Below, one piece after another: positions 48,701-54,700 of a stretch of DNA of 64,000 bases; the stretch's first letter is position 1; each line of letters starts with the position of its first letter. A program made the translations under genes and the position numbers. The DNA is from Oculina patagonica (lineage: Eukaryota): NCBI RefSeq assembly GCF_052425735.1, contig NC_135762.1:26350001-26414000 (forward strand), written 5' to 3'. The notes beneath the pieces are model-generated. The model did not search any database, was not told where the DNA came from, and worked only from the letters and a program-made list of their open reading frames with translations.

Positions 48701-51700
48701 TACGAGTTTCTTCTACAAGCCAAGCAGAAGTTTAATATGAACGAACTGTCATAAAACAACATAAATTAAGATTTATCTACAAATAATTTTTAGTACCATG
48801 CATAGAGCAGACAGAGAGCTATAAAGCGCTGTAAAAGTCTTGTGCTTGGATTTTTGAATTGCCGTGTCTCGGTCTCAGATTTTAAACGAGGGTCTCTGCA
48901 TCTTGGCGTGTCTGGGATTTTACCATTCTACACCCCTACCTTTTAGTCCTCATTTCAGGAAGATAGCAAATTGACATATGGTGTAAAATAAACATGATGA
49001 TTCCTAACCTTTCCTTGTTCTTTCAAAGCATTTGCCAAGTTGCAATATGCATCTGGGAAGTTTGGTTGAAGTTCAATCGCCCTTCTGTATGTATCCACTG
49101 CCAAGTCAATAAGTCTGCAAGAACAAGGTTTGTTAACAAATCATTACCATCAAACCAAGCACACAAACCCCAGGGGGGGGGGGGGTACTTGCAGTATACA
49201 TGACGGGGGGGGGTCCGACGGAGCTTCATATTGCGAACCCAAAAAAATACATGAGCCTGAAATTTTACACCCAAAAAAAAAAACCTGACATCAAAATTTT
49301 CTACCCCAAAAAGTACAAGACCTAGCACCTCTATACTGATTTATTCAATAAAACAGACTTTAAGACCTAAAAAAATATATGACAGATCTCTTGACCCAAA
49401 AAAATACCGAGGGTGTAAATTTTCAACCGAAAAAAATACGTCGGACCTCCCCGCCATGTATACTATACATGTAAGTACCCCCCCTGGGACACAAACCTTC
49501 CACTTACATATAAAAGATGCACATTCCACCACATCAAACTACTTTTCACACTTACCCTTGTTCGTAATATACACAAGCCAAGTTTCCATGGACAACTGCA
49601 TGATTGGGACTCAAGTTTAATGCTCGTAGGTATGCAGCAACAGCTCTAAAAAAAGTGAATTAGGAAAAAGTGAACAATTGTATTTTTTCTGTGTGACAAA
49701 TGTACCAGAAGTTAACAATGTAGGACAACTAAGGTACCAACCTGTCAAAAATCCTGGCCTCTTTTAAAACATTTCCAAGGTTGATATATGCATCAAGAAA
49801 GTTCTGATCCAACTGGACAGCCTTCAGTGAAAAAATAAATGATGAGATAAATATACATTGTTGGTAAAATTAATACCAAATTTAAAAATGGTTGTTTTTT
49901 ATCATAAAAGTGAAAATTAATTTAGTTCCCTCATAGCTCAGTTCCAAATAGCTTTGTTGATGCACTGCAAACACTGCACAAATATGTTGCTTCCTACTTT
50001 CTTGCAAGATGTAACTCTATTTTCCATTAAAAACTACTAAGCCAGTATGCTAAGTAAATTGTGTAGAGAGAACTAAATTTTTTCTTCAAAACTTTTCTTG
50101 AAAATGTTTACAAGATTAATTCCACTTGGCAAATTCTTGCCAAATCAGAATTTGAACTTGCCAATAAATTGATGTGCTGAGTAGACAATTTGACTATGAA
50201 GATATATGTTTTTTAAAGAAATACTCTAAAGTAAAACAACAACATTACCTTCTCAAAGTGATGAATCGCCAACCAGATCTCTCCTTGAGCATTGAAGACG
50301 CACCCAAGGTTACTCCACGCCACTGCAAAACTGGGCTGCGTTTCTATTGCTTTCAAGTAGCACGCCTTTCAATTTAAAAATGAGCAGCAAAAACGGGGAA
50401 AGCAGAGGGCAGCGAGAGTAACAGCAGAGAGCAAGAAAAAATCAAAGCAAAAACAAGAAATACACAAACACAAGCAAAACAGATTGCAAACAGCAGAGAG
50501 CAAAAAGAGACAATCATGGTTTTGTTCTCATCCTTTGTAACAACGTAATACTATTCCGACATTTTTCACCAACACTTTTGTTGGGGTCTTGTCCTGTCTT
50601 GGCTGAAATGCAATGCTATAGTATCCATTAGTTCACAGAACACCTTGTCCCATTGAAGAAAGCATGCACCTGCCTTCAGGGAAGGTGTGCGAGAGTGTGA
50701 CGTCCTTGACTTGCCTCAACACATGTCAAAGTAGAGATCAAAGAAATTGCATTGTGGCGCCAGTGTGTTTAAATCACATTCCAAAACAAAACAGAAAATC
50801 TACTTTATTTACAGACTAGATATCAAAGGTAACAAGCTACACAATTTTTTCGCTAAGCTACACAGCAGTTGCGACGAAAATTTCACCACACTGTGCCGAC
50901 AGTTAGTTTGCAACTTCTTTAACCTCTATGAAAACAGACCCCAAAATGTCCAGTGATTGAAATTTACATTGCTTACACTTGAAACAAATGGACATTTGTT
51001 TCAAATGCAAGTAGTGAGATTTATCTCTCAATAACCAGGCTCTGGGATCCATTTAAATAAAGCCCAAAGCTTTACGGTGAGGAGACAAGACAAGATGTGC
51101 ATTCTCTACACACAACTGCTTCCAAAGCACCAAATAAAATTAATATTTCACCCTTGCCTTAGAATCTTTTTGCCAACCATGCTTAGTGTAGCTACACTTC
51201 CAATCAGAAATTGCATGACAATGGCAGTGCAGCTTTCTTACTAACCGGGACAAGGTGTTGAATGGATAAAATTGTTGTGTTTCTTTCTTTCGAGGTATGA
51301 GATCAACCACATGACTAAGAGAAAAGGCAGGCAGCCAACTCAAGCCAGAAACAGGAGTTTTCAGGGCAACAACTCTTTTTGGAGTAAATTTTACAGATGA
51401 ATCACTGCTAACAAGATGCAATGATCTTTTGGTTCTCGGTATATACCGTACACAAAGAGGCTTTGAAATGGAGTAATAAATTTGCAAGAACAAAAGCTGA
51501 CTCCTGTTTCTGTTTGAGAAGTCTGTAACAGCAAACTGGGCAAGCATGGTAGACAGGGAAAGCAAGTTTGGGAAAGGGCCAAAGACGTGCTTTGAGAAGT
51601 TCATCTTTCTGCAAATGGTTTCCCTTCAGCCGGTGTACTCCATCAAGACCGTACGTACCCTGTATAAGTTTACTGGGAGAGATAAATAAAAGGGGAAAAC

Positions 51701-54700
51701 AAGGGAAGATTGAATGTTAGGGATCCAAGTAACAACGTAACGAGGACCAACTGCCTGCTGATCACCGGTACTCTGCAAACCTAACCAATATAACTGTGCC
51801 TTTGCTTGGAAACAATTTGTCAGCCAACAGAATCCAATATTCTGGTAAGTACACCAAATTAACAAAGGATCGTGAAGATGCATAGCTAAACTCCTCTCCT
51901 TAACAAAACATTTTTATTTCACTGGCATATGTACTAGTCCAAGCAAATTCGCACAGATGTATTGGTCAAGAATACCTCCCAAACAATCAAGTATTCCTAA
52001 AACCTCAAATACTATAACCACACAATCTTTAATAGTACCAATTCTACATATTATGAGAGTATTTCCAATAACCCTGCATTAGTGCAAGAGTGTGAAAAAA
52101 ATTTGCCAAAGTTACAATGAAGCATTTCCACCTTGCTGAGAAACATCCTTAGTAAACAAATGGTTTAATGAAATGTAAAACAATCCAATCAACTTCTGAA
52201 ACATGCTTATCACAGCAGAATTCCTCGCATAAAGTTAGGCTGATTCAAAATTGTGTTTTGACAAATACCTAGATGTGTGTATATGTAAATGAACTGCAGA
52301 GCATTTTGAAATTCACTCTCATGCATTCAGAATTCCACTAAAGTAAACAAAATAATGAACATGGAGCACACGCAGCTGAAGACTATACCCATAACTTGTT
52401 AAATCCCAAGTTTTGAGATAGCAATTCTCCTTACTGTCTGACTTATATTTTTTCATAACAGTTATGAGAATTTAGAGGAAAAAGAACTGTCCTCTAGCCG
52501 ATAGTTTTCTCAATTCTCATCACTACCCTTCTTGGCAATGAACTGATAATGTAAGGAGAAATCGCATATCAATTAAATCTTCATAATAAAAATCAGCTGA
52601 GGTGCACAAATCTCAAAATTTAGACTGCATCCTATGGTGCAGATACCTGTTTTAGCATGGCGTCAGTGTCTAGCTGACAAAAGCAAGTTTTTTATGTAAA
52701 AGCCGAAGTCCACCCCAACTGATATTTATTACGACAGAGAAAATTGGAAAAAAACACAAACCTTGCAAGAGAAACATTCACAGTCAAGCACAGACAGACT
52801 GCCTTGAAAATAAATGTCAATCCTTTTTTTTTTCACACAACAATACTATACCTTGGCCTCTTCTAGTCTTCCAAGAGCTTTCAACAAGTTGCCAAGATCA
52901 CTCCTTACACAATATAGATCCTAGCGAAATAAAATACATATATATCATCGGTTAACATGAATGGGCCTTATGCATGATAACGTCATATGCTCAAAATTTA
53001 CCACCCAGCCTTTTTTACACAAATTTCTTAACCCTCAGCCACCTTCCTGCAATTTTTACATGGGCATTCTTTCCATCTTTGCTTATTTGGAAGTTCACTC
53101 ATGATAAAAAATTTATGAGTTTGCCCTTCGAAACCGAGGCTAGGTGGCAAAAATTGAATAAGATATTCTGATACAAACATGCCTAAGGGCTACCAGTATA
53201 TTGTGATAATGAATTAGAGAGATTTCTTGGAGAAAAATGCTGGTTTGGACTTAACCACTATCGACAATACTAGATAGACACGACATGTATGTTTGATATT
53301 GACATTTTCACAACAGTGCCAAAAACCAATATAACTTTCAGCATTTATCACTTTGTCTCTAGAAAACTATAATATAAACAGGTAGCCGTCCCACCCATTT
53401 TCCATCAAAAGAGGAACCGGCTTACAGACTTTCGCAGACATTTTAATACCACCCAAAAAATAATAATATTTTTAAAAAGTTTGGTCCTAAATAGTACTTT
53501 GAGCCACAAATTGTTCAAAAGTGGTTGCTACTAAAATACAGTTGAACCCCGTTATTTCGAACCGTCAGGGGAAACAAAAAATAGTTCGAAATAGCGGGAG
53601 CGATAGCCGATAGTAAATTACTGAAGGGCAAATCCAAGGACGGGTTAGTTCGAATAACAGGGAATTTGAAATAACCGAGTTCGAATTAGCGAGGTTCAAC
53701 TGTAGTTTTTTAAGTATATTGTCTCCCTTTGTTTTTTTTTATAATTCTCTTTGTATTTTTTCAAACTTAATTTTGAAGACATTTTTTTTTATTTGGCTGC
53801 TTGCAAGACTAAACTGAATCAGTGAACAACTGGAAATATTTCTCAAATGTGGTCAATCACAAAGGCCAATAAGAACTGAAATTATGCCAAGTCCCTTGAC
53901 CATTACTAAGGCAGTCAATCTGTATCGAATATTACTAAGGCAGTCAATCTGTATCAAGAAAATATCAAGCAGGCGGTGCTTATTTCATATTATTCAAGTG
54001 CATGCCATTCATTTTCAACCAAGCCAAATATTGCTTTTGGATTTCTTTTACAAGCAGGAACCAGCCCAAATATAGCAACAAAAAAATACTTATTGAAATC
54101 CCATGTGGGAGACTGTTTCCACTTATAATTCAAACGGAACGACAAATGCGATACAAAAGACCTGACTTATTTCACATTCCATGCATCAATCAGAAAATCT
54201 GTCTCGGAACTTACCAATATGGGTGGAATTTCATAATACCTGGCCGCAATTAGGAAATATTGCAAACTGTGCTTGAAACTGTCGAAGTATATCCGTAGTT
54301 TATCAACGGAAAACACGTTTCTTCGCGACACAACTGACATTTGAATAATTTTGTTTGCACAAAACAATAGAAGGACATGGTGGTTTAATTACGGACGAAA
54401 TAAAATTCGGCTAAAATCAATTTTCACTAAAAAAAATCTGCGAGATCCACCAAAACAAACTAAATGGATATTTTCTCGCAGAGTTATGAAACACAACTGA
54501 CAAATCGCGAGTTTCAAACCTCGAAAGAAATTCGCAACAAAACATTCACGTCATTTTTTGTGCAAACAAATAAGCTTACATGACGGTCAAAGTACAGATT
54601 ACTCACTAACCGGGTTATACTGCAATGCCGTTGCATAAGCATTCACAGCTCCTTCTAAATCACCAGCAGCTACCAACGCGGCAGCCAGGTTGATGTAGCC

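Follow-up and report, generated by a model that had tools for sequence, protein, structure and literature searches.

A long, retained OGT intron with a used internal splice acceptor in the coral Oculina patagonica: a probable non-productive splicing switch

Results

Layout of intron 4 and its splice sites

The OGT gene of the coral Oculina patagonica lies on the minus strand of a 64-kb stretch of contig NC_135762.1, referred to here as the window, and the subject of this study is the fourth intron of that gene. Intron 4 is 2486 nucleotides (nt) long and is split into two sub-introns by a very strong internal 3' splice site and a 5' splice-site-like motif 14 nt behind it. The features on which the analysis turns are as follows, in window coordinates.

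52920-52852, minus strand: OGT exon 4, 69 nt encoding 23 residues that end ...GRLEEAK, with a phase-0 end; read directly
52851-50366, minus strand: OGT intron 4, 2486 nt, GT..AG
50365-50249, minus strand: OGT exon 5, whose peptide ends HHFEK
51720-51716, minus strand: CTAAC, candidate branch point about 43 nt upstream of the internal AG, proposed from the sequence only
51715-51675, minus strand: pyrimidine-rich tract of the internal acceptor; read directly
51674-51673, minus strand: internal 3' splice site AG, used according to junction contigs of runs X1 and X7
51672-51659, minus strand: 14-nt unit, TAAACTTATACAGG, which starts with TAA in frame after exon 4
51658-51653, minus strand: GTACGT, 5' splice-site-like motif with the best score of the intron; use not detected
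52851-51673, minus strand: upstream sub-intron, 1179 nt, excised when the internal acceptor is used
51658-50366, minus strand: downstream sub-intron, 1293 nt, retained in runs X1, X2 and X7
54610-52921, minus strand: OGT intron 3, 1690 nt
50248-49822, minus strand: OGT intron 5

A first-pass annotation of the window had described the internal motif as a candidate poison or decoy micro-exon with a strong acceptor. Direct reading of the minus strand found each of its elements in place, namely the CTAAC, which may serve as the branch point, the pyrimidine tract, the AG, the 14-nt unit starting with TAA, and the GTACGT. The strength of the acceptor was borne out as well. Splice sites were scored with a crude consensus built from our own approximate frequencies, for which ranks alone are meaningful, and by this measure the internal AG at 51674 ranks first among the 138 AGs of intron 4 and the GT at 51658 first among its 170 GTs. 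Of the 19 bases scored for the tract, which span -21 to -3 relative to the A of the AG, 17 are pyrimidines, the highest number among the top-scoring AGs of the intron. Across the 64-kb window, 22 AGs match the score of the internal AG (14 on the minus strand, 8 on the plus strand), and pairs of an AG followed by a GT, at or above both scores and no more than 300 nt apart, occur just twice: one is the 14-nt unit, and the other starts at AG 54856, taken to be the acceptor of OGT exon 3. The AG/GT arrangement exceeds chance expectation, as first-order Markov shuffles of intron 4 yielded a pair of this strength in 0.2% of trials at a spacing of up to 30 nt, and in 2.8% at up to 300 nt. The outer ends of the intron are weak, both at the 5' end (AAG/GTATAG, score 0.66; the slash marks the exon boundary) and at the 3' end (tttttaaattgaaag/G, where the exon 5 acceptor scores -3.96).

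A genome-wide search found the acceptor region to be single copy, on which ground we rejected a transposon origin for the 14-nt unit; the sole multi-copy part of intron 4 is a repeat of about 145 nt at 52417-52562. The internal acceptor region is predicted to be unstructured (z +1.7). Rfam returned only sub-threshold matches over 50000-53200 (E 0.1-0.5), and Pfam returned no match with three long open frames of intron 4. The repeat at 52417-52562 is a short interspersed element with at least 23 diverged genomic copies that are 68-82% identical.

Intron 4 is kept in RNA from which introns 3 and 5 are removed

Contigs and reads were aligned to 49822-54610, which holds introns 3, 4 and 5 together with exons 4 and 5. 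Three of the runs, X1, X2 and X7, are Logan contigs from three studies that carry three organism labels and are labelled only 'RNA?', whereas X24 consists of raw poly(A) reads. In X1, X2 and X7, intron 5 has a depth of 0, as does intron 3 outside a repeat at 53534-53704, save for a depth of 3.2 over a small part in X2. Contigs ending at 52921 run on with the end of exon 3, which gives the exon 3-4 splice, and loose ends at 50248 in all three runs correspond to the start of exon 6, which gives the exon 5-6 splice. Because introns 3 and 5 are near-empty and the ends at 52921 and 50248 are spliced, these three data sets behave as RNA. The repeat at 53534-53704 in intron 3 is a short interspersed element, and many RNA contigs cross it into unrelated flanks.

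Intron 4 is covered end to end in all three runs at a depth of 115-943, with exon contigs at 415-1494. The depths of its two halves and of the exon 4 contig are given below.

X1: upstream half 313.6, downstream half 942.8, exon 4 contig 698.7
X2: upstream half 244.5, downstream half 331.7, exon 4 contig 835.2
X7: upstream half 114.9, downstream half about 450-570, exon 4 contig 415.5

Contigs bridge exon 4 into the start of intron 4, and the end of intron 4 through exon 5 into spliced exon 6. The bridge from the end of intron 4 to exon 5 is found in X1 record 1 and X7 record 17, and the downstream sub-intron is represented by X1 records 1 and 4, X2 record 10 and X7 records 17-19. As the contigs join both flanking exons, the coverage of intron 4 belongs to OGT RNA and not to a separate transcript. 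A large share of OGT RNA thus keeps intron 4 while the neighbouring introns are removed, which, judged on introns 3-5, is the selective retention that marks the vertebrate-type OGT detained intron.

The internal acceptor joins exon 4 to an immediate stop

Part of the RNA leaves exon 4 for the internal acceptor. A joint 52852->51672, which skips 1179 nt with GT..AG on the gene strand, occurs at a depth of 675 in X1 and 220.7 in X7, alongside an unspliced contig, 51645-52881, at 313.6 and 114.9, respectively. Contigs break exactly at 51674 and 51645, as expected from a branch of the assembly graph there, and in X1 the depths sum at 51672, with 675 + 313.6 upstream versus 942.8 downstream. Past the joint, the RNA keeps the 14-nt unit and all of the 1.3 kb between it and exon 5. 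X1 record 4 and X7 record 19 read straight through GTACGT, and the second junction of a micro-exon, 51659->50365, was not seen in the contigs of X1, X2 or X7, which drop rare forms. No letters lie between the two sides of the canonical joint 52852->50365, as they would for an included micro-exon, and the 14-nt unit, which is not a multiple of 3 and begins with TAA, would not keep the reading frame.

The productive joint 52852->50365 is present in X2 at a depth of 414.6, and retention in this run amounts to about 37% of exon 4 exits. In X1 and X7, the exon 5 contig continues unbroken into intron 4. The contigs, which cannot prove absence, suggest that the productive junction is a minor path in these two runs.

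Full retention of intron 4 reads ...EEAK V stop (GTA TAG), joining exon 4 to 51672 reads ...EEAK followed immediately by TAA, and hypothetical inclusion of the 14 nt would likewise stop at once. By their reading frames, the retained and the acceptor-spliced forms are both predicted to be non-productive, with a stop within two codons of exon 4. The junction formed by acceptor use, AAG/TAAACT, contains no GT and therefore allows no onward splicing to a productive mRNA; a recursive-splicing intermediate was rejected on the same ground, since no GT 5' splice site is regenerated. Use of the internal acceptor would commit the transcript to a non-productive fate. The first-pass annotation is supported in the retention of intron 4, here relative to introns 3 and 5 (X1, X2 and X7), in the junction 52852->51672 (two of the three contig runs) and in the in-frame TAA directly after phase-0 exon 4. 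Of the poison or decoy micro-exon that it had proposed, the used internal acceptor with its stop stands, and the 14-nt cassette with its exit junction 51659->50365 is not supported by the contigs, which continue through GTACGT and retain the downstream sub-intron instead.

We also considered whether the retained sequence encodes protein. A TGA 4 nt before the start of exon 5 closes its reading frame and rules out an N-terminally extended isoform. A stop-free frame of 161 codons at 51625-51143 (minus strand) lies within the retained half of intron 4; its sole homologue is P0273, a 98%-identical open reading frame on L009, a Logan contig colinear with the same stretch, and all three differences between the two change the amino acid. 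With no Pfam match and a copy of the same stretch as the only homologue, a conserved intronic protein was rejected, and the 161-codon frame is probably non-coding.

Sequence variation in intron 4 and in another coral

Variable sites in intron 4 were pooled from X1, X2 and X7 and from contigs L009 and L010, the haplotypes being about 1-2% diverged. L009 and L010 are colinear, unspliced, about 2% diverged and probably DNA, and were used for sequence differences only. The upstream half carries 34 variable sites versus 10 in the downstream half (50366-51672, 1307 nt including the 14-nt unit), a density of 2.9 versus 0.8 per 100 nt (p = 5e-5). A 515-nt stretch, 50703-51216, is without a variable site among the five haplotypes, and the 68 nt at 51655-51722 contain one change, at 51703 in the pyrimidine tract (L009/L010). 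This distribution suggests that the retained downstream half of intron 4 may be under constraint.

A perfect 18-bp hairpin with a 4-nt loop is present at 51011-50974 (minus strand), inside the variation-free 50703-51216. In its 111-nt context, it folds at -36.6 kcal/mol (z -4.5), and it has weak microRNA-like Rfam matches (E ~0.1). The hairpin may give rise to a small RNA, or it may contribute to the structure of the retained intron.

Genomic sequence of a different coral was found in a contig from a metagenome collection (L030, OFEP01000151.1, 2399-7876). Its exon 2-3 peptides are 100% identical to those of the window, and its non-coding DNA is about 71-78% identical. Intron 3 measures 2212 nt in this coral versus 1690 in the window, and intron 4 opens with the same weak GTATAG. 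Homologue searches for cnidarian OGT proteins returned only arthropod, hemichordate, brachiopod and flatworm proteins.

OGT intron 4 in other phyla

The same 69-nt exon 4 and intron position are shared by the coral, the hemichordate Ptychodera (L011) and the brachiopod Lingula (L012). In Ptychodera, intron 3 is 299 nt and intron 4 is 2654 nt (3266-5919); in Lingula, the corresponding lengths are 234 nt and 2501 nt (3339-5839). Three more animals, represented by genomic contigs, have an intron 4 of 2269, 2931 and 3557 nt (L035 795-3063, L048 4926-7856 and L022 1915-5471, respectively). Intron 4 is of similar length in seven animals (2269-3557 nt), and its neighbouring introns are often only 160-300 nt.

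In seven cDNA-like JGI contigs, exon 3 is directly joined to exon 4 and the sequence extends at least as far as the exon 4 end; L013-L015 then proceed to exon 5, and the other four (L017-L020) run into intron 4. The most complete case, L017 (Ga0307390_10000528, 164-4663), encodes residues 1-167, then has a 2550-nt GT..AG insert (665-3214) exactly at the intron-4 position, and continues with uninterrupted residues 168-650. The encoded protein matches P0252 at 98-100% identity, and spliced mRNA for this OGT is often found in marine metatranscriptome assemblies. L018-L020 enter intron 4 and continue in it to the end of the contig. L019 has a whole-genome-shotgun-style accession and is possibly genomic DNA of a species without introns 2-3, and it was not counted as RNA evidence. 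The accession series of L017 and L020 (Ga03073xx-Ga03074xx and Ga03146xx-Ga03147xx) also give full-length intronless OGT contigs, L013/L014 and L015/L016. This points to a probable RNA origin of L017 and L020. Either way, intron 4 of L017 stands out, as an intron selectively retained in RNA or, were the contig genomic, as the sole intron over 650 codons.

An arrangement resembling the coral 14-nt unit is seen in two of these introns and in the other coral contig. In L012 (~3647-3667), L048 (~5075-5095) and L030 (~7621-7645), a fair GT (GTAAGA, GTGCGT and GTAGGG, respectively) lies 11-16 nt downstream of the best internal AG. Such a micro-exon-like unit at the best internal AG was found in 4 of 8 introns 4 versus 2 of about 27 control introns, with thresholds that were set post hoc, so that the count is a lead only.

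Discussion

Collectively, the data suggest that intron 4 of coral OGT is probably a detained intron of the OGT kind that works as a non-productive splicing switch. Among metabolite-linked detained introns, OGT intron 4 is the best understood, and going by the exon numbering of the papers, the human detained intron 4 presumably follows the same 69-nt exon as coral intron 4. In human cells, OGT RNA keeps intron 4 under high O-GlcNAc, for which an internal silencer is required (Park 2017, PMC5588854). The human intron is described as a pair of detained introns on either side of a cassette exon that contains a premature stop, and the product joining exon 4 to this poison exon rises at high O-GlcNAc (Tan 2020, PMC7261177). 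Overlapping the silencer is a decoy exon of some 143-153 nt whose alternative splice sites are weak (PMC6097662, PMC12017769), and these sites are needed for retention (Parra 2018, PMC6097662; Govindan and Conrad 2025, PMC12017769). Conservation of the element is stated only as far as jawless fish, and Drosophila OGT is described as lacking an element like this intronic splicing silencer (ISS) (PMC5588854). A search of the literature found nothing that combines OGT, intron retention and cnidarians.

The coral shares four properties with vertebrate OGT intron 4: the selective retention of a long intron in otherwise spliced RNA, the joining of exon 4 to an internal acceptor, a prompt stop, and a downstream sub-intron that is left in. 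The details differ. Whereas the human element is a cassette of about 143-153 nt with two weak 5' and two 3' sites, the coral unit is 14 nt long and has the strongest sites of its intron; the human cassette lies in an element that is ultraconserved among vertebrates, whereas no similarity or deep conservation was found for the coral unit; and the half-spliced form is a major species in the coral, whereas decoy-spliced forms are rare in human cells. A retained intron of more than 1 kb with a recognised internal acceptor and a premature stop is also what is seen in decoy-exon retention of SF3B1, ARGLU1 and DDX39B (Parra 2018), although decoy exons are said to engage the ends of the intron and not to be spliced themselves, whereas in the coral the upstream splice is completed and the downstream sub-intron stalls. 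Recursive splice sites and recursive-splicing exons (RS-exons) likewise place an internal acceptor in a long intron and give partly spliced RNA, but they regenerate a 5' splice site (AG/GT), which the coral junction AAG/TAAACT does not. Finally, the splicing control of a long intron in Drosophila sxc/OGT (mentioned in Park 2017) also ties the output of an invertebrate OGT to the handling of an intron, in a gene that is said to lack an ISS-like element (Park 2017).

A mechanism consistent with this layout can be proposed. GTACGT, 14 nt behind the acceptor, may recruit U1 and strengthen the acceptor by exon definition, while the 14-nt spacing would hinder GTACGT as a donor; together with the weak acceptor of exon 5, this would cause the second sub-intron to stall. 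The diversion of transcripts into stalled or stop-containing RNAs would then lower the output of productive OGT mRNA. By analogy, the coral layout may be a cnidarian counterpart of the vertebrate detained introns that flank a poison or decoy exon.

Of the other explanations, the one that survives best is splicing inefficiency without regulation, in which an intron with weak ends is removed slowly, a strong cryptic AG inside it captures exon 4, and the by-products are degraded. The weak terminal sites (0.66 and -3.96), the difference in acceptor use between runs (seen in X1 and X7 and not in X2) and the failure to find the unit in the coral contig L030 would all fit this explanation. We nevertheless consider it unlikely, since the non-productive forms are not minor: their depths in X1 and X7 are comparable to or above those of the exon contigs, and retention in X2 is about 37%. 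Moreover, the top-scoring AG and GT of the intron are separated by only 14 nt (0.2% of shuffles), diversity is low in the retained half, intron 4 is long in distant phyla and cDNA-like contigs from elsewhere enter it, and an essential, dosage-sensitive gene would be expected to purge a costly cryptic site.

More doubtful still is an alternative isoform, in which 51672 starts a long exon and the product is either a TPR-only protein of exons 1-4 or a re-initiated short OGT. The junction 52852->51672 is abundant, a stop right after exon 4 would give a clean TPR-only product, and the low diversity of the downstream 1.3 kb is what a functional untranslated region might show. However, the RNA goes on to exon 5 spliced to exon 6 (X7 record 17, loose ends at 50248), which places the exon 5-6 junction, and presumably later ones, behind the stop, the usual trigger of nonsense-mediated decay. 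No AATAAA was seen where the few 3'-tag reads would fit, the TGA upstream of exon 5 bars an N-terminal extension, and the 161-codon frame has no homologue besides the same-stretch copy P0273.

We regard it as very improbable that the coverage comes from a separate intronic transcript or element, such as a transposon, a non-coding RNA or a hairpin host. The 161-codon frame at 51625-51143, the strong hairpin at 51011-50974 (z -4.5, with its weak microRNA-like Rfam matches at E ~0.1) and the lack of strand information in the contigs would leave room for one, but contigs join exon 4 to the start of the intron, exon 4 to 51672 and the end of the intron to exon 5, the summed depths in X1 agree at 51672 (675 + 313.6 versus 942.8), no Pfam or Rfam match passed threshold, and the intron is single copy outside 52417-52562. 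Least credible of all is a chance pseudo-exon in a constitutively spliced intron, for although long introns often contain pseudo-exons and the motif was spotted by eye, the junction is used, the intron is retained, and score ranks and shuffles disagree with chance.

Several points weigh against reading intron 4 as a splicing switch of the detained-intron kind. The RNA evidence consists of assembled contigs and not of reads, so that depths are whole-contig means and rare forms are dropped, and the shorter side of the junction contigs is just 28 nt, the limit for 31-mer unitigs. The poly(A) reads of X24 number only 8 and are uninformative, and the organisms of X1, X2 and X7 are about 1% diverged and so effectively represent one lineage. 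X2 is without the joint 52852->51672 despite an identical site sequence, and use of GTACGT was seen in no run, so that an exon role for the unit, as decoy or poison, is hypothetical. The low diversity of the downstream half could reflect haplotype or recombination blocks, given the few haplotypes. In L030, the contig of the other coral, the alignment spans exons 2-4 but reaches only some 560 nt into intron 4, and nothing recognisable as the unit was found in the 1349 nt of intron 4 that precede the end of the contig; this would weigh mildly against sequence conservation of the unit. A comparison of intron 4 from coral, hemichordate and brachiopod found no significant similarity among the three. 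Nothing, finally, ties the splicing event to O-GlcNAc.

It is tentatively possible, though we would not rate it above that, that the non-productive splicing of this intron goes back to the common ancestor of cnidarians and bilaterians, as an autoregulatory switch linked to nutrients and more than 600 million years old that has been kept without conserved primary sequence. If so, OGT dosage in a reef coral could be coupled to the sugar supply of its symbionts. An intron 4 that is both retained and spliced to a stop in a coral would date this form of control before the cnidarian-bilaterian split, and would show that such a layout can persist without conservation of sequence. That coral intron 4 answers to O-GlcNAc, nutrient state or symbiont-derived sugar is, by analogy, speculative. 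The three junctions offer coral biologists a simple reverse-transcription PCR read-out for any sensing of O-GlcNAc, or of hexosamine flux from symbionts, at the level of splicing.

A tandem repeat beyond OGT

Just beyond the 3' end of OGT, at ~21000-39500 of the window, lies a tandem array whose repeat unit measures about 6.1 kb. GC content dips every 6 kb across this region, and strong AG sites at 24415, 30527 and 36639 are spaced exactly 6112 nt apart. At a shift of 6112 nt, ungapped identity reaches 81-84% in some 1-kb blocks.

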